A DNA stretch of 64,000 nucleotides from Asterias rubens (lineage: Eukaryota). Shown here in pieces: positions 18,881-29,397 of this stretch; within the stretch, counting starts at the first letter, position 1, and each line of letters starts with the position of its first letter. The stretch is from NCBI RefSeq assembly GCF_902459465.1, contig NC_047067.1, positions 18,228,001 to 18,292,000 on the forward strand, given 5' to 3'. Under the pieces are notes generated by a model. That model made no database searches. It saw only the letters and a program-made list of their open reading frames with translations, and was not told where the DNA came from. Both the position numbers and the translations under genes were made by a program.

Positions 18881-19523
18881 AACTAATGGTTTGCCAAGCT
18901 GCGTTGCGTTTAGACCCCTACCCGACGTACTACGACAACCTCACCAGGCGTTTGTACGGAGACCAATACAGATACAGATACACTGTACATTACAACAAAA
19001 CACTTTGGAAGTGAAACTAAAAGTCAGTGCCATCCGATTTGTAAAGAAAGTAATATAAATTTGACATTGCATTTTCGTACGAAAACGCTAAAAATGTAAT
19101 TGTCAATTAGTGGACACCAACTACACACTATGCACCACACACCTGCAACCTACATTGGGAGATATCCAGATCCAGAGCTGCAAAGTGAGTGAGTGTTGTT
19201 ATGTTGCATGTTGTCTTCCTCCATAAACATGTTTTACTTTTATAATCAACAATCTTACCCAACACAATTTAAGGAGCCAGTAGTAGTACTAGTTAGTCAG
19301 GTAAAATTCAAGCGAATAACCCAGGTACCTTCATGCAAATCACTTCAATTCAATAAACACTTTCCAATTTCCATAGTTGATTCCTGGGGGAGCAGAGGAG
19401 AGCACACGTTTTGCTTTTCGGGAATTCCAAAGAAAGACTTTCTCTTTAGAGTTTAGAGCACCACCTTCACAAACTCTGTAGCACGCAACATACAGGCATA
19501 AATAAATACGTCCAGGTCAAAAC

Positions 19524-19878
19524 TAGACTTGTGGACAAGTCGTTAAATCGGCCCCACGTGCTGAGATAGTGCTCCCCCGACAACACTGCTCTCGCGCGAA
19601 CTGATGGCTCCCCGAATTTGACTCCTCATTATAGGAGTCAAATTCGGGGAGCCATCAGTTCGCGCGAGAGCAGTGAGTTCGCGCGAGAGCAGTGTTGTCG
19701 GGGGAGCACTATCTCAGCACGTGGTGGGGCCGATTTAACGACTTGTCCACAAGTCTGGTCAAATTCGGGGAGCCATCAGTTCGCGCGAGAGCAGTGAGTT
19801 CGCGCGAGAGCAGTGTTGTCGGGGGAGCACTATCTCAGCACGTGGTGGGGCCGATTTAACGACTTGTCCACAAGTCTA
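19524..19878. mobile_element. Palindromic foldback MITE, TAGAC...GTCTA ends, 9-bp target duplication GGTCAAAAC (Mutator-like), right arm duplicated
   Basis: Target duplication at 19515-19523 and 19879-19887. Near-perfect palindrome centred at about 19630; the right arm is repeated from about 19758. Confidence 0.8.
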
Positions 19879-20833
19879 GGTCAAAACTAGCTCGGCCCTG
19901 TTTTGGCAAAAGGGTGTATCTCAAAAAATCATATTTTGAGATAAACGGCGCTTAAGTTCAATTACCTACCATTTATAGATATTCAATAATAAATGGTCAA
20001 ATTGTTCTTTAACTAAATGTGTGATTTATAATTTAAATAAGAGAACAAATTTCGTCCTTCTTGTAAAGTTGTTTTTTCTGTAATAACCATTTTTTAATAG
20101 TTACTCCGTTCTGACTACAAAATGTGGCTTGAAGGTTGTAATGTTTTCTAGGCAAAAGGGTGTATGTCATGTTAGTCAAATCAAGATATGTGTATTGTTT
20201 AAACAAAAGGGTGTATTTTGAGATATCTCAACTCTTTGCTAATGTTTTTCTTTGGCAAAAAGGTGTATCTCGTCATAGCTATTCCTTATTGACGTGCCTG
20301 TTTTGGCAAAAGGGTGCATCTGAAGATACTTTGTATCTTTTCCATTGAGACATTTGGCAAAAAGAAGTAAATTCAAATGTTTGTATGCAATAATGGCAAA
20401 AATCAGTACATAATTATTGTATGATTTTACTTAACATTAGAAGTCACAATATACAAAACACACAATATACACAAACTTAAATTCACGGCAATATTTGCCT
20501 ACTTCCATAACATCCATATTTAATAAATAATAACAGTAACAGGGAATTGATAACAGGGAATTGATACGGAAAATATCCACAACTTAAAAAATTTAAACCA
20601 ATTAGCAAACTAATACTTCATCAGTACCCATCAATACTTCTTTAAGGTTATGATAGAACAATTGTATTCAAACCATTTTTTCAAATAATGAAGTGTTACT
20701 GTTTACAGACATGAAATGTTGTTTCATATGTATTGCAAACCAACAAAGGGATGGCCCAACACATTTCCAGCTGAAAAGATGCTTGACTGTATTTCTGATT
20801 TTACAAATTTATCCACTCTACTCCCACTGCATT

Positions 20834-22530
20834 TTACTCCTCCCGCGATGTTTCCAGATCTACAGCCTCCTCAGTTACGACCATATTCTCGAAGAACTCC
20901 TTCTTGTAAATAGGCATTGTTGTGGTAAGCTTCAGTATTTCTTCTTTTTTTGATAACGCTACACCTCTTGGTGCTTCCATTCTTGGTACGGACGTAAGTG
21001 GATTTTCGTTGCGAGACAGTTTGTTCTCTATCTCCCGAACTTCAGCTTTCTTCAACAGCTTGATCTCTTTGAAGACACAATTTTCCTCGTGGGATTCTTT
21101 GATGTGCATGCTCAAAGAACCTCGGCGAAACTGGATTACTTTAAGGTCCTTCAAAACCAAGTTTACCTTTTTTGCACGATTTTCAAACAGGTACATTGAA
21201 CTATGGTCTATTAGTGCACATTTCATATTTTTACGAGAATTGTTGATTATGTCGACAATGTCTGTAAAATCGTATATAGCAGTTTGACGGTTCATCTTAG
21301 TTGCTATGTTTCCATGCACAGCATCTGCAGCCATGAAGGTGTGACCAGGTTCAAAGTACTTTATTGTGATACTCTGGGCTCCCACTGAAGGGTCATTTAC
21401 GATCCTTGGCATTGCTGAGAGCAAAGTCCAGTTCTTGTTTTGAGAGGAGCAGTTGTCCGCATACAATATGATTTCCTCTTTGTCCCTGTTTTGTTTGATG
21501 AAAGCAACGTACGAGCTGCAGACATTGAACGCCTTCCTACCTGCCTCCGCCTCATGCCATAGGACACATGTCGCTTGTCCGTCTTTACCGGGACATGCAA
21601 ACGTCTCATTGAAGACAACTAACTTCCGGGAGAAGAAATGATCTTTAGTTGGCACTTTTGGTATCGTTATTGCTTTTTGCATGTCTACTGTTGCCACAAT
21701 TACTTTATTGTGTTCTTCCATTTTCTTCGTATCAAGATGAAGGGCTTGTCTTGCTTGTTCAGCATCATTCTTGTGCTTTTGAAAACCAGAGCATGCAGCA
21801 CAGTCACATGTAGTACAACTATGTTCCAATTCCGAATGTGTATGATTATGTTCCATACATTTCTTGCACAAGTCATTTTCAGGTTGTGCAAATGATATGT
21901 TCATTGATTGAAAGACTCCAAAGTAGTAAGTGTAAGAGCACACTACTTCACCCTCAGTCAGGGAGTCTTTGAAATGATTGTACATAAGTGTAATCGATAG
22001 TTCAGACGGAAGGTACCTTCGGTTGGGAGCATGTTGCCTCTTATAATGGGAAACTTGAGGCCTGTATGAGTTAATGTGAGTAACAACTTTGTCATGATAC
22101 TCTTGGGAAAGTTTATTTTTCGGTTCATGATGACCCCTTTTGTCTCCTGTAGTTCCAACAATTACATCCCCGTCATTTCGAATATTGTTCAAGGCAGTAA
22201 GTACAAGTTTGTCACTTCTGTAACCTAGAGTGTGTAAAAAGAAAGTCTTACACACTACATTTGCTCCCAAGCGCCACACAAGTGTGTTAGAACGTCGTGA
22301 GTGTTTGGCAGTGTTTGTAACAGAACGCTTCTGGATTCGGTCAACATTTTGAACGAGCCAGTCTCTTTGACGGTTGTATTGAAGATCCCAAAAGTTGTTC
22401 CATATTGCTTGCCGTTGGATTTCCGGGATTAGCTCTGGACATTTTTTTGAGCACTGACAAACTGGTAGCATTGGATGCTTCCCCCGATTAGTTTCCTTCT
22501 TTTCAAAACTTGTTCGAGAGCGCTTTTTAG
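20834..22530 (-). CDS. Sola1 DDD transposase, main exon (uninterrupted, about 565 codons)
   Basis: VDMQKAITIP, FFSRKLVVFN, LYADNCSSQNKN, YFEPGHTFMAADAVHG. Acceptor ttctttgcag at 22531 (phase 1) is in frame with the ATG at 22471 (KKRSRTSFEKKETNRGKHPMLPVCQC). Confidence 0.9.
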
Positions 22531-22652
22531 CTGCAAAGAAAATAATACATCGAAAGTGTTTAAAAAGTACCCAAGATACATATAGTTAGTTCGAGAATGT
22601 TATTGGTTGGCAAGTATTCATATTGGTATGCATTAACGAGAAAATGACTCAC

Positions 22653-25247
22653 TTTTAGTGGGTAGGTATGTACCAAGGTCCAATTTCATAGAGCTGCTTA
22701 AGCAGAAAAAATGCTTGACAAATAATTACTGAAAAAAATTAAGAACGGATCCAGTCACAAATTGTGCAGATGATATGGAATTTTAGCTATAAACCTCTTT
22801 CTGCTAAGCAAAACAAATCTTGCACCGAGCTGTTTTTGTGTTTGAGAAGCTCCAAATAAATTTTCCCCAGTTGTACATCTTCATACAGATCTTTCAAGTA
22901 GTCTTGCACGTTGTTTTGTTTATGTAGGGAGCCCAAGTGCGCCCTCAGTGTTGAACTTCTAAAAAGTTTACTTTTGGGGATGTCACATGACATTCGTTCT
23001 CTTTTAACTGTTAATTACTCTACCTTTTGGGGCTTCGGCCATGACTTCATCCTCTTCAATAGGTATTGGTATCTGATCAATATCGCCTGTAAAATCAAAT
23101 ACGGGTGATTGATAATAAAATATTAAAGGAAAATGTATTTATAATTTAAATTTGTTTACATTTTTTATAATCAATTTAGTCAAAATGTTTTTGTAAGAAA
23201 TGAACCTTGCGAAAACGCAATGGTGTACGACCTCCTATAATCATTATTATTATTATTTTTTTCACTGTCATTTACTATACCTTGCGGGTCCTCGGCCATG
23301 ACTTCATCCTCTTCAACAGGTACATGTATTAGTATCTGATCAATATTGCCTGTAACAGGCATGATATTCGGTCCTTGGGAAAAAAAGTTGGAAAATGTTA
23401 TTGAGTACAAAGGCTGGCTCACATGTACATGCTGAAAATTCAAATATAGGTGAATGATTGTGTAATTTAAAAGAAAACAAATAATCATACTATACATACA
23501 CAAAATCTTGTCATACAACTTACTACTACATTTTTGAACTTACTTTCAATGTCGCCACTTATGCAGCTCATCAGCATGTCATTTATCGCAGTTTCAGCTG
23601 AAGGGCATATCATGATATCATCTATTGCAATGAGAAAAAAAACTCAATATTTCAAATAACAATTTTTTTTATTGTTTAGTTACTTTTAGTTTGATCATCC
23701 TTTACTTTTATAAAAAATAATAAAGACCACAGTTACTTACCAAATATTGTATCAGATTCATCTGATAAGCTTTGCATGTCAAAGTCCTGGTCCTCATATT
23801 GTGCTGCAGGTGCGTGGCTAGAAGATGGCAGTCCTGCGTTGGTGAAGGAGAAAGCTGGTGCAGACGGAAACAATTGTTTACGACATGATGCCTTTTTAGA
23901 TACAAGGCTGGTTGAAGCAGGCAAAAGGGGCAAGGCCGTCACTTCTGCATCTGTAACAGGCACATTGATGTCTAATACACTAGGCACATCAATGGCAAGC
24001 TTAAAGGCTTGGGGGACACACCTGGGTGAGGTTGAATCAGTCACGGTGGGTAATGCTGCTGCCTGTACATCACTAAGCACATCAGTTGCAGGTTTAAAGG
24101 CTGGGGGCACCCAAGTGGTCGAGGCAACTGTTTCTGCTGGAGTTGGTGAGGCCACTGTCGAGGGTAAACAAAAATATACAAACCTAATGTAAGGACAATA
24201 TTGTATGTAAAGCCAAGGCTAGTTTGATATAACCAGAAAATAGTTTTTAATTGAGATTTCCAAAGTTTTCTTACCTGTTTCCTCATCTGTGGGAACGAAT
24301 GATGATGGTGAATCGGTCACAGAAGGCAGTGCTGCTTCCTGCACATCACTGGGCACATCCATTGAAGGCTGAAAGACTGGGGTGACCCACATGGTTGAGG
24401 CAACTCTTTTAGACCTAGTCAAAGCAACTACGAGAGGTAATGCTCTTGCACATGACTCAGTTTGAGTTTTGGAAAGTTCAATACTACCAGTTGCAGGTAT
24501 GGCCTCATTCAGTGTAGCTGGAGCTGGTAAGGCTGCAATCGAGGGAAAAATCACATAGAGAATAACAACAAGAGAGCGCAAACAGGTTAAGAGAGTTGAG
24601 GTCTTGAGAAAGTGAATTTCTAAATACATTTGACGTTTTCTTACCTACTTGTCCTTGGTTCATTGTTTCAGTTGGGTGAGACATGTGCAGCAATGAACTT
24701 GCAGCTGATGATGGCACTTCACATGTTGGCTTGGTTCCTAGGAATAAAGTAAATAACATATTAATAGAAATTTAAGTTAAAAGTAGAGTAGTATGAAAAA
24801 GGAAGACAACAGCTTCCATAAACTGCTTCCACATCCTCAATAACTCTGATACAAGAAGTATTTTTTTACATGCCTCAATACTGAATTTTTGATCCACTTA
24901 AGGCATGTCTACTCAAAAATACTTTATTTACATTTCTAAATGTTAGTTTACCAACCTTTGCTAGTTGTAGGCACAGTAACCGTCATTGCTGCTGGGGCTG
25001 GTAAGGCAGCTGTTTAGGACAAAAACAATTAATAATAATAATAATTAAAGTGTTTTATATATGACAAAAACGTACATGTATGTAAAGCTGGTGATTTTTT
25101 GATGAAACCAGAAAACAAGATTACTTGGAATTTCCTGAGTTTGCTTACCTGCTTCCTCATCTGGGTTAGTAATTGCTGCAGTTGGATGAGGTGTGTGCAG
25201 CAATGCACATGCAGCTGATGATGGCACTTCACATTTTGGCTGGGTTG
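22653..25247 (-). CDS. Candidate upstream exons of the Sola1 gene (S/T/P/A-rich): 25149-25247, 24956-25009, 24645-24737, 24275-24532, 23741-24154, 23281-23349, plus a disrupted 22653-23086
   Basis: The first six each have AG/GT boundaries, a length divisible by 3 (99, 54, 93, 258, 414, 69 nt), phase 1-1 junctions and an open frame. The last is interrupted by a MITE and a probable 1-nt indel. Confidence 0.65.
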
Positions 25248-25792
25248 CTAGGAATGAAACAAAAAATCGAAAATAGATCCAGCCATGGTTTACAACTACA
25301 TGTAGACAATTATCTAAAAGGCAGGCATCAACATTTATTACTGTTTTCAATAAAGGCAAATGGTCTTCATGCACTTGGGGTGATAGTGTTGTCAAAAACA
25401 GCAACATGTAATTTATTGTGATTTTTGTTAATCCGTGTTAATGTTTGTTTATTATTAGTTATTGTTAGCCTTTTACCGTTCTGATGATGTTTTAAGAAAA
25501 AAAAATCGCTCATTCTAGTAAAAGCATTAGGGAGGTCTATGTACTACAAGTACATTTACAATAACATAGGCCTACGACCCAGTAACTGGGGCGCTGTACT
25601 TGTTTTTTTGAAATGTTAACATCTACGAAAAACGAGTACATCGCCACAGTTACTGGGTCTAGGCCTTTACATAACTTATTTTATCACTTATCAGTTCAAT
25701 TTTAAAACTTGTAATATTATAATCATGATAGAGGTGGGGATCAGTCTAACTCTAATCTTGACAACTTGTTTTTGACGTCTTTTGCCACTAGC

Positions 25793-26142
25793 TAGACCCA
25801 GTAACTGGGGCGCAGCTGTACTCCTTTTTTTTAAATTTTGGCATCATCGGTCGTATTAGCGCCCCAGGTTATTACTGTATGGTTCATACATGATCCTACT
25901 CTCAGCATGACCGATGGGTGCCCTGCCTCAACCGCGTAGTCGTAACGGTTGCGGCAGGGCACCCATCTAAAATTTTAGACCTGCCCTGCCTCGACAGTGA
26001 CGATTACGCGGTTTGAGGCAGGGCACCCATCAATCATGCTGAGAGTAGGAACATGTATGAACCATACATTAATAACCTGGGGCGCTAATACGACCGATGA
26101 TGCCAACATTTAAAAAAAAGGACGCCCCAGTTACTGGGTCTA
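25793..26142. mobile_element. Branched foldback MITE nested in Sola1 (TAGAC...GTCTA ends)
   Basis: Long inverted arms with an inner hairpin gatgggtgccctgcc...ggcagggcacccatc. Imperfect target duplication GCCACTAGC / GCCACT-GC. A short derivative lies at about 25575-25663. Confidence 0.75.
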
Positions 26143-26520
26143 GCCACTGCACTAGCTATTTTTTAACCATTACCATGACCATGTTATTCAATTTGCATTC
26201 GACTTCCAGTTTTTACAGCTGAAACATTTTTGGGAATATTTTGGGGTGTTAAACTTCAACGTGTATTGTAATTGTTAAAGCTTGTGATGATAATAACGAA
26301 CTAGGCCTAAAAAGAAAGTAAAACTTATTTTGTATGAACATTGATTTGATGAATATACGATAAGTGACCAAAAATACATGACCGGCAACCGTCGTGTTAG
26401 ACTGCGACGGCCAATGCATTTGATTTAGCATCAGTGATAAAACAGCATTATTGCTGAAATTATAAATATCAACCAGTAATATTCTACATACCTTTACGAT
26501 TTTTAAGCCGGGCCAATTTT

Positions 26521-26655
26521 AGGATAACTTTCCGTATGGCGCCACCACCTTTTCACTCATTTTTACAAAAAGGGATATCTCATTGAGGTTAATTAAATAC
26601 TATATTATTTAATATCGAATGAAAAAGTGGTGGCGCCATACGGAAACTTTTCCCA
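26521..26655. mobile_element. Small inverted-repeat MITE
   Basis: TTCCGTATGGCGCCACCAC...GTGGTGGCGCCATACGGAA. Confidence 0.7.
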
Positions 26656-29397
26656 ATTTTAACATCACAAGTCCTCTACTTGCCATTTTGTATTACAGCT
26701 ACTGCATGTCCAAGCAAACAACAAATTGCATGACAGCTAGCTAGCTGCAACCTCGTCCCCATGGTTTACTTTATTTCCAACCATGTTTACAATAGTCCTC
26801 GTACTGCTCGACACACCCTGGGGACGAGGTCGAGCTAGCTGTGTGTTGCCTTTAGTCTGCATGCCGCCTGCATGTACTTTCACTACATGTGCAGTCAGGG
26901 TATAAGTCAAAACTAAAATGATGGCGCCCTCTCTGTCAGGTTGTAAACAAGGCAAAAGGGCGTAACATCAGAATACACCCGCCGCCGGCTAGCAATTAAT
27001 AAACAGTCTTCAAGGCAAAAGTGTGTATCAAGAGATAAGTCTTGTTGACATAAAGCTGTTTACTATTGATCAATCTACCTTTTTGATGGTAAAACGGTGT
27101 ATGTAGAGATACGGCCCTCTGATAGAAAATAATAATTTGGGAGTAACAAACTTTAATATGGCAAAACGGTGTATCCGAGAGATACATCTTTCTGACGCAG
27201 AATTAGTCAGTGATAGCAACATACTCTTCACATAGCAGAAGAGTGTATCTATAAGATACGTCTCTCTGACATAAAACAAGTAGCTTGTAGTGCAATATTC
27301 TTTCAGGGCAAACATATTTAACACTAAGTTAGGCTGTTTTGCCTCAACATACTCATCTATAAGCGGGTGTTATCTATGAGATACACCGTTTTGCCAAAGA
27401 AATCGGAATGAAAATATGAAAAATATGTGAAGATAGCACATACTATCTTTAAAATGGTACATCGTACGGACTTGAGACTTCGTTCATTGGGAAAAGCGCC
27501 CTCACTTTCCCTAGAAATTGTATTTTCTCAAAAAGTTGAAAAATTGGGTTACACCCTTTTGCCAAAACAGGGCCGAGCTGTGGACGACGCTTTTGCGACG
27601 ACGGACGAGAGAGCATGCACTGTATGTATGTACGTTATGTATGCGTGTATGTGTATGGTATGGTGTATGCTGGTACTCAGTTATTTTTGCATTGGCTTAA
27701 CACAGCGACGTGAAGAGTACCAGTTATATAGTGAGTACAGTAGAGTAGAATCCTACTCGTACATGTACCATAGGAAATCTCTTCGCATATCTTGCACCAA
27801 TCGTGTTAAATTTACGTGTCCGTGTGAATGCTGCCCTCAAGCGGGGGTCAGAGATGCGGCGGGACACAACGAGATTCTCGACGTTCTTGATCCATGTGGT
27901 TCGCTGTTTTCTCAAAAGGCACTGTATTCAACTGAAACGAATTTTCTCGGGAATGCACACACCCAAGTTTTTGTTGATTTCCGAAAACGTCATTTGCTGT
28001 AAATTAAGATCCGATAAATGGAATTCTACATCATTTTAAGGCGAGGTTAGAGACTTGTATTTTGTCACCACCTTCATGAAGACTCTATCTATTGGGAAAT
28101 TAGTGCATCACGAAACTTCATTTTGGCCTTGGAGCCCCTCTTTGCAGACGATATGGCAACGTGGATATGCCATTTATATCAAAATAAATACCGCCATCAG
28201 ATAACCAAATTCCAGTTACAGATGAGAAGACATTTCATGTTGTTCATTATCAGTCTAATCTCTTAAGGTAAAGTATTAAATCGTACAATAGTTGCCGCGA
28301 GGCATGCCGTCTGCAAATAAAGCCAATATTGTGTCCTAAATGAACATTTCAACCAAAGGGGTGTTCACAAATTTGTGAGCAGCGAGGTGGGCTGGAATTA
28401 TGACGGAAGGCCAATAGAGGAGTTTCGGGGTACTTCCATTGTTGCTCTCTTAGTCCCCTTATGGGGTACCCTAGAATATAAAGAACATATTGTGGGGTAT
28501 TATTGTTCCATTGTTTAAAGTACCCCGTAAGTCGGCGTGTGAACGAGCACAGACACTCACATTAGTTTGTGTAAACAGCTGCAATCAGGGGACCTCACTC
28601 TTTTGTTTGTACTTCTTTTTAGCAACAGCTCCTTTTTTGGATGTGTACATACTTTCAACTGGGGACCCCATTGTCCGTTTAATTTATGTTCCCAGTTCAG
28701 GTGGTGTGATAATTCGTATGCTATTGACTTGCGGGCTCTGTAGTTTTATATTTTTTAAATTTATTTATTTATTTATTTATTTTTAGATAATAGAGCAACA
28801 TACCCCACAAGGGAATTCTTTAACCTGGACTCCACAATACATTGTTTTAGAAAAGGGCAAAATATAACATCAATAGCAGGACCCCAAACCTGACCCGTAA
28901 GGTTTTGTGTGTGTGGGGGGGGGGGGGGGGACTTTTGACCTATATTATGACGATTTAAATTAGCCTATTTGATTTTTGAAACATCTCTTTGTAGTCTCAG
29001 AATTCTCAAGCTGTACGTGGGCTTCCAAAATTCCCCATGGAGCATGCTGTATCGGCTTAATTATTTCAGTTTATCATTCTATGGCGACTTTCTTCAGGAG
29101 TCTGTCAAACGCTTCCTCTTCAAGTACTTTCTGACTCCTTGTCCTTCGTCTTAGATATCAAAGTCCATGCACAAACCCATCACCTGCTACTTGAGTAGAA
29201 CTCGTGCGTGACTAAAATGCTACAAAAGACAGGGGAAGTGTTCGGTAAGATCTATTGGAGAAACACGAAATTGTTTAAGCAATGGGCGGAAGTAATCGAA
29301 ATAAGGTGGATCAGAGAGATTTAGTGTCAAGTATTCGTCGACTGCTAATCGAAATCTTAGACAAAAAATCTCTGTCTACTAGTGGACATTAGCAAGG

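Follow-up and report, generated by a model that had tools for sequence, protein, structure and literature searches.

A probable Sola1-type transposon in Asterias rubens with a transposase gene that appears to include nine upstream exons encoding a disordered arm

Where does the gene of a transposase begin, if open exons lie upstream of a catalytic exon that possesses its own ATG? This question is raised by a transposon of the starfish Asterias rubens, located in a stretch of 64,000 nt (C6:18228001-18292000, hereafter the window) of the 417.6-Mb assembly in which our genome searches were carried out. A preliminary description of the window had reported a Sola1 transposon whose transposase seemed to be spliced to a large, low-complexity N-terminus, and had proposed either a transposase of about 1000 aa with a long disordered arm or a second product made by alternative splicing. 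In this study, we conclude that the element quite probably carries a Sola1-type gene of ten exons, of which exons 1 to 9 add a disordered arm of ~402 residues to the transposase encoded by exon 10.

The transposon extends from 19893 to 27575 and comprises 7,683 bp in the window, or 7,543 bp without a nested miniature inverted-repeat transposable element (MITE). Its inverted repeats (19889-19937 and 27531-27579) are 49 nt long and paired at 84%, and direct reading of the outer ends (19893-19918 and 27550-27575) reveals a perfect inverted repeat of 26 nt. The tetranucleotide AGCT flanks the element on either side. The perfect terminal inverted repeats (TIRs) and the target-site duplication (TSD) noticed earlier are therefore real features of this locus. 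Three other copies in the genome are flanked by CAAT, CGCG and an imperfect CACA/CACT. The motif TTGGCAAAAGGGTGTATC has eight matches in the window against a chance expectation of 0.1, all of them inside the element and at most ~560 nt from its ends. These subterminal copies are likely transposase binding sites, following the usual pattern for such sites.

The catalytic part of the gene is found in exon 10, which has 565 codons on the minus strand. It contains an uninterrupted open reading frame (ORF) of 545 aa at 20834-22471(-) with its first ATG at 22471, as had been described, and the frame stays open for 19 further codons upstream, up to an AG acceptor at 22531/22530 that is preceded by a pyrimidine tract. 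The sole Pfam match of this ORF is DUF7869 (E 5e-7). In the numbering of the 967-aa RefSeq protein introduced below, D685, D761 and D805 are invariant in 60/60 aligned sequences, and all relatives checked by eye retain E796; E796 and D805 are both candidates for the third catalytic residue. An AlphaFold2 run with the 60-sequence alignment modelled residues 410-960 with high confidence. In a wide structural search, residues ~650-838 match the cores of retroviral integrases, Mos1, Metnase and Sleeping Beauty (Z 7-9, root-mean-square deviation 3-4 Å over 130-160 residues) and residues 538-623 match winged-helix domains, while Foldseek against PDB gave weak transposase and integrase rows only. The core is thus RNase H-like and has three invariant acidic residues.

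Residues 1-400, the arm, are modelled with a predicted local distance difference test (pLDDT) score of 32-48 and show no secondary structure; a score below 50 over this whole region is what a disordered N-terminal arm, as first proposed, should give. A, P, S, T and V are abundant in the arm, and its acidic residues outnumber the basic ones by 51 to 23, with a strongly acidic stretch over the last 120 residues. Moreover, it carries acidic Ser/Thr clusters, for example QSLSDESDT, and few lysines or arginines.

A word search with the 564-aa stretch of exon 10 led to a RefSeq protein of 967 aa with 100% identity, annotated as 'uncharacterized protein LOC117305910 isoform X2 [Asterias rubens]'. RefSeq holds full models of 967 aa (XP_033629274 and XP_033646690) and of 1002 aa (isoform X1, XP_033629273 and XP_033646689). 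In the same cluster two arm-only models of 414 and 449 aa, labelled 'PRRC2C-like', are placed on the copy in C124. The exon map (Table 1) was obtained by placing the RefSeq proteins residue for residue on the window and then checking the borders. All nine introns are GT-AG introns in phase 1, and the length of each internal exon is divisible by 3, in agreement with the frame-symmetric phase-1 exons described before. The earlier count of six open upstream exons with about 330 codons and one disrupted linker has to be revised: there are eight internal exons with 384 codons, exons 1 to 9 together provide ~402 open codons, and the supposedly disrupted exon has an open frame if splicing occurs at the acceptor 23375/23374. 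A start exon, which had escaped the first reading, could be located, although in the window copy it is split by the MITE.

Table 1. Parts of the transposon and of its gene, in positions of the window
Feature	Position	Strand	Basis
Left TSD, AGCT	19889..19892	.	identical tetranucleotide at 27576-27579
Left TIR, at the gene's 3' end	19893..19937	+	outermost 26 nt recur without mismatch, inverted, at the right end
Four subterminal TTGGCAAAAGGGTGTATC copies	19903..20320	+	motif count
Exon 10: KKRSR, KHP-Cys motif, winged-helix-like domain, RNase H-like core, stop	20834..22530	-	ORF, RefSeq mapping, AlphaFold
Exon 9, 63 nt, acidic EEDEVMAE module, paralogue of exon 8	23024..23086	-	RefSeq mapping, self-comparison, BLASTP
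Intron-8 read-through of the arm-only models, tail GIVNDSEKNNNNNDYRR...TKTF, stop at 23183	23183..23280	-	RefSeq mapping
Exon 8, 93 nt	23281..23373	-	RefSeq mapping, self-comparison
Exon 7, 78 nt	23544..23621	-	RefSeq mapping and borders
Exon 6, 414 nt, two WVPPAFKP..DV.SDVQ.AALP.VTDS repeat copies and an acidic Ser-rich patch	23741..24154	-	RefSeq mapping, self-comparison
Exon 5, 258 nt, one copy of the 35-aa repeat	24275..24532	-	RefSeq mapping, self-comparison
Exon 4, 93 nt, paralogue of exon 2	24645..24737	-	RefSeq mapping, self-comparison
Exon 3, 54 nt	24956..25009	-	RefSeq mapping and borders
Exon 2, 99 nt	25149..25247	-	RefSeq mapping and borders
Alternative start of isoform X1, ATG 25407 in intron 1, exon-2 acceptor read through	25248..25407	-	RefSeq mapping
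Exon 1, split by the MITE in this copy	26686-26492	-	RefSeq protein mapping
Exon 1, 3' part, ARLKNRK and first base of the split codon	26492..26513	-	RefSeq protein mapping
Insertion of 140 nt: MITE of ~132 nt and duplicated target TAAAATTG	26514..26653	.	inverted repeats, genome copies
Exon 1, 5' part, ATG 26686, MASRGLVMLKL	26654..26686	-	RefSeq protein mapping
Four subterminal TTGGCAAAAGGGTGTATC copies, at the gene's 5' end	27012..27565	.	motif count
Right TIR	27531..27575	-	inverted-repeat pairing and direct reading
Right TSD, AGCT	27576..27579	.	direct reading

Concerning the junction between arm and transposase, the RefSeq models of 967 and 1002 aa connect exactly the mapped exons to exon 10. 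A BLASTP comparison of residues 300-520 with a single-ORF relative of 804 aa (P0029, whose near relative P0026 comes from the moth Heliothis virescens) aligns 'PIPIEEDEVMAEAPK' of exon 9 and 'AKKRSR' of exon 10 across the border without a gap. The stretch ahead of the ATG at 22471, KKRSRTSFEKKETNRGKHP, is conserved in the 60-sequence alignment with the consensus KRxR...KHPxLPPC, and in relatives with longer ORFs this KRxR...KHP motif sits internally. The methionine at 22471 itself belongs to a conserved KHP(M/L)xPxC motif and is not a conserved start. Since the basic stretch and the KHP motif precede the first ATG of exon 10, a functional protein needs the upstream exons. Gene models, homology across the border of exons 9 and 10 and the logic of the reading frame thus support the splicing of the arm to exon 10, and with it the predicted transposase of about 1000 aa.

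The second product of alternative splicing, put forward at first as the other possibility, has a counterpart in the arm-only models of 414 and 449 aa, which read past the exon-8 donor into intron 8. Taken further, these models could mean that the element makes two separate products, an accessory protein from the arm exons and a transposase that is translated from the ATG at 22471, either unspliced or internally initiated. The ORF of 545 aa does possess its own ATG, and in the copy in C15 it has remained open even though the exon-10 acceptor is lost. Such a transposase, however, would start within the KHP(M/L)xPxC motif and lose the basic KKRSR upstream of it, relatives hold arm, acidic patch, basic stretch and core within a single ORF, and frame and phase agree at nine of nine junctions. 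We therefore regard two separate products as unlikely, and a single spliced gene remains our preferred reading.

An arm in front of the core is no peculiarity of the starfish element. Among the 120 relatives listed, 56 have at least 100 residues and 19 at least 200 residues ahead of the basic stretch. Tandem-repeat arms rich in P, A, S, T, D and V are found in P0015, P0016, P0030, P0037, P0052 and P0054, in the order arm, acidic patch, basic stretch, core. The genome also contains a second transposase family of the same superfamily, distant at 29-30% identity, with single ORFs that reach at least 1006 aa (C3:17178545-17179717 and C5:3471839-3473011). In these ORFs the core is preceded by a 29-aa S/T/P/G repeat in ~13 tandem copies, and the number of repeats varies among copies. 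Further loci of this family lie at C12:5157897 and C15:11463988. As long low-complexity arms are common among these transposases, the architecture is less exceptional than it was first thought to be. Within the searched length range the starfish arm is nevertheless the longest, and it is the only one found split into many exons. The element L074 of a relative measures 3.4 kb and has a single ORF of 724 aa; a paralogue of the starfish transposase with 48% identity (C15:13618283-13619930) is frameshifted and has no arm. The closest relative outside Asterias, P0002 (ENA ERZ26222911), has 64% identity and an ORF of 514 aa; ~2.2 kb upstream on the same strand of its contig lies an ORF of 296 aa, a candidate arm exon of that element. 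The spliced models are already known from RefSeq, even though unnamed there. We found no paper describing such N-terminal arms, and none of those searched refers to DUF7869.

How did the arm arise? Self-comparison of the arm region revealed internal duplications that include intron sequence. Exon 4 is 80% similar to exon 2, in a match that takes in 29 nt of flanking intron. A second match, at 76%, links the 3' ends of exons 2 and 5 and continues into the adjoining introns, over 72 nt in intron 2 and 73 nt in intron 5. Exons 8 and 9 match at 82%, and a unit of 107 nt is repeated in exons 5 and 6 at 78%. Because these duplications include intron flanks, the arm must have grown at the DNA level, by duplication of exon-plus-intron units; since all introns are in phase 1, duplication of an exon leaves the frame unbroken. 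For the 35-aa repeat pair of exons 5 and 6 the ratio of nonsynonymous to synonymous substitution rates (dN/dS) is 0.27 (P=0.012), and pooled over four arm repeat pairs it is 0.58 (P=0.03).

Relatives of the arm itself were looked for with three queries, the database proteins P0122, P0001:1-402 and region 19-402 of P0001. Word searches yielded no match among proteins of 228-724 aa and none besides the arm itself among proteins of 532-1692 aa. An exhaustive HMMER scan of 1.84 billion representatives returned three fragmentary single-exon ORFs belonging to this element and nothing else, and among 5.8 billion clusters searched an arm homologue was likewise absent. This exhaustive search covers representatives of 50% clusters, and as the representative of the arm's own cluster is evidently without an arm, close orthologues bearing one could be hidden. 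In a six-frame search of the whole genome the arm matched only the four copies of the element.

Several findings weigh against the reading of a spliced, functional arm in a Sola1-type gene. Between exons 2 and 4 dN/dS is above 1, and in the duplicated units the flanking introns have kept about the same similarity as the exons, which indicates that much of the arm is under weak constraint. Divergence among the four genomic copies is too low to yield dN/dS, and the searches found no homologue outside the element by which conservation of the arm across species could be judged. The support for splicing consists of gene models, homology and frame logic, and that for the proposed regulatory role of the arm of an analogy. 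Finally, the target preference AWWT/AWDT has been called a hallmark of Sola1, after Bao et al. 2009 (PMC3845634), and in this handful of sites it is fitted neither by AGCT, CAAT, CGCG and CACA/CACT nor by TTCT and TGCG, two flanks read on one side only in metagenome contigs.

The weak constraint, together with the orphan status and predicted disorder of the arm, would also be expected if the arm were non-functional filler, that is, exonised low-complexity sequence which is carried neutrally and joined on paper by gene models that over-interpret spurious transcripts. This would leave unexplained why an open frame of 402 codons has been kept over nine phase-matched junctions and why the 35-aa repeat has a dN/dS of 0.27. 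Moreover, arms of like composition recur independently in relatives and in the second family of the same genome. We consider mere filler to be quite unlikely. Constraint on the arm is, by these sequence comparisons, real but patchy. Capture of the arm exons from a host gene, in the manner of Pack-MULE-like transduplication, is highly improbable, since apart from the automatic RefSeq name 'PRRC2C-like' nothing links the arm to a host gene and it is without relatives elsewhere in the genome or in the 1.84 billion representatives and 5.8 billion clusters. The name PRRC2C most likely reflects a low-complexity match.

The copies of the element differ in the state of the gene. In the window, exon 1 is interrupted between codons 11 and 12 by an insertion of 140 nt. 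The MITE responsible has inverted repeats of ~50 nt and an 8-bp duplication, TAAAATTG, and is present in dozens of copies with 93-100% identity on most chromosomes, some of them in tandem or nested pairs. The insertion shifts the frame of exon 1; it is present in the window copy only and missing from the three other genomic copies. Translation of the window copy from its own first ATG therefore cannot yield the full protein. As the ends of this copy are intact, it could still be mobilised by the transposase of other copies. The copy at C38:170509-178050 has no break in the gene, and neither has the copy at C124:7145-14686, which shows one Met-to-Val change in exon 9. In the copy at C15:13870160-13877675 a deletion of 25 nt, corresponding to 22546-22522 of the window, removes the exon-10 acceptor. 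The RefSeq model of 967 aa appears to be placed on C6, on the window copy, and must consequently skip the MITE as a gap of 140 nt without canonical splice sites. This non-canonical gap suggests that the model was built from transcript alignments of MITE-free copies. If so, it is an indirect sign that exon 1 is transcribed.

Two further repeats were noticed at this locus. Directly outside the left end (19522-19885) a unit of 121 nt is repeated twice with 99% identity; the region contains inverted repeats of 57 nt and 35 nt and has a GC content of ~50%, richer than its surroundings. The element seems to have landed next to or within another repeat. Intron 1 (25576-26149) harbours a large foldback with arms of 110 nt (25822-25931 and 26013-26122) that are 95% complementary and with outer repeats GACCCAGTAACTGGGGCG. 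It is found in all copies of the element, has short matches elsewhere in the genome and may be an older nested MITE.

The element has moved recently. Identity among the four genomic copies and seven metagenome contigs is no lower than 99.6%, over as much as 6.6 kb, and the insertions occupy different sites, each with a 4-bp duplication of its own. In one of the metagenome contigs (L035) the flank matches C15:13787843-13788488 with 100% identity, and there the reference carries a single AGCT and no element. The site is thus polymorphic for the insertion, and an insertion that the reference does not have implies recent movement. Intact ends, the unbroken copies in C38 and C124, the identity of at least 99.6% and the one polymorphic insertion together are what an autonomous and recently active element would be expected to display. 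In another metagenome contig (L037, 7638-8254, compared with C12:4011345-4011942) the flank is 96% and the element 99.98% identical; the divergence of the flank could come from a divergent haplotype or from a host species that is closely related. Of the 23 matches to the transposase in the genome, more than half lie in the last 3 Mb of C15 (11.4-14.1 Mb of 14.67 Mb). This cluster comprises decayed copies with stop codons, the paralogue with 48% identity, one full copy and the polymorphic site at 13787843. The end of C15 may be a transposon-rich region or a trap.

Sola1 is reportedly one of the groups that Bao, Jurka and Kapitonov distinguished in 2009 within the Sola superfamily of DNA transposons. 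Judged from its sequence, the starfish element is a probable member of the Sola1 type, as TSDs of 4 bp, three invariant acidic residues and relatives in Lepidoptera, Hydra, sea urchin and molluscs favour this assignment. Compared with the TIR of the relative's element L074, 18 of 30 positions match. The TIR of Bombyx Sola1_NA_BM has been published (Table 1 of PMC3845634), and with it the starfish TIR shares 19 of 36 positions in register (P ~0.0015 before correction for four offsets).

We propose the following picture of the element. A single minus-strand gene with ten coding exons would produce the transposase, and exon 10 would encode everything that a transposase needs: a basic stretch resembling a nuclear localisation signal, a DNA-binding part composed of a Cys-rich and a winged-helix region, and the RNase H-like core. 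Nine phase-1 GT-AG introns would join exons 1 to 9 to it, and the arm would have been built inside the element by exon-plus-intron duplication. By this view the arm is a fast-evolving regulatory appendage that probably takes no part in catalysis. By analogy with the disordered N-termini of piggyBac transposases, a self-limiting or host-contact role is most likely: the arm could act through phosphorylation or turnover that limits the transposase itself, or through multivalent contacts with host factors. Read-through of the exon-8 donor would release an arm-only protein that could modulate activity, which we regard as a weaker possibility.

Since unrelated arms of similar composition recur across the family, they suggest a general, so far undescribed regulatory feature. 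Stated in full, the rule would be that DUF7869/Sola1-type transposases bear a fast-changing, repeat-built, disordered arm which limits their own activity, and that in the starfish this arm has been split into symmetric phase-1 exons which grow by duplication and can be released through retention of intron 8 as a trans-acting regulator; in this breadth the rule is doubtful. The arm is nonetheless a clear case of a protein region growing via exon-plus-intron duplication within a mobile element. For the annotation of the genome, it follows that the Asterias rubens genes named 'uncharacterized protein' and 'PRRC2C-like' are products of this transposon. The element looks to be among the few Sola-type transposons caught while still mobile. 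To our knowledge, no biochemistry or structure is available for Sola transposition, and because it is found in an echinoderm that is used as a laboratory model, the element is a candidate for such studies.

Among known systems, the element shares with Sola1 the TSD of 4 bp, the RNase H-like core and three invariant acidic residues, whereas its targets do not follow AWWT/AWDT, and with 7.5 kb and ten exons it contrasts with compact single-ORF relatives such as L074. The P element of Drosophila has a multi-exon transposase gene as well, and retention of one of its introns gives a truncated protein that regulates transposition. The truncated product by intron retention is the likeness to the starfish models; the P repressor, however, retains the DNA-binding domain, whereas the arm-only product of the starfish would have no folded domain. 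In maize the transposase gene of Ac is spliced and encodes a short Pro-Gln repeat near the N-terminus, and En/Spm makes two proteins by alternative splicing. Spliced transposase genes are thus common to Ac, En/Spm and the starfish element, but the maize elements belong to other superfamilies and are without a disordered arm of 400 residues. The nearest documented parallel is offered by piggyBac and piggyBat, in which the N-terminus is non-conserved and predicted to be disordered and carries casein-kinase-II sites that inhibit transposition; activity rises when these sites or the whole region are removed (PMC11707139). The starfish arm resembles this region in being non-conserved, predicted to be disordered and furnished with acidic Ser/Thr clusters; it comes from another superfamily, exceeds that region 3-4 times in length, consists of repeats and is spread over nine exons.

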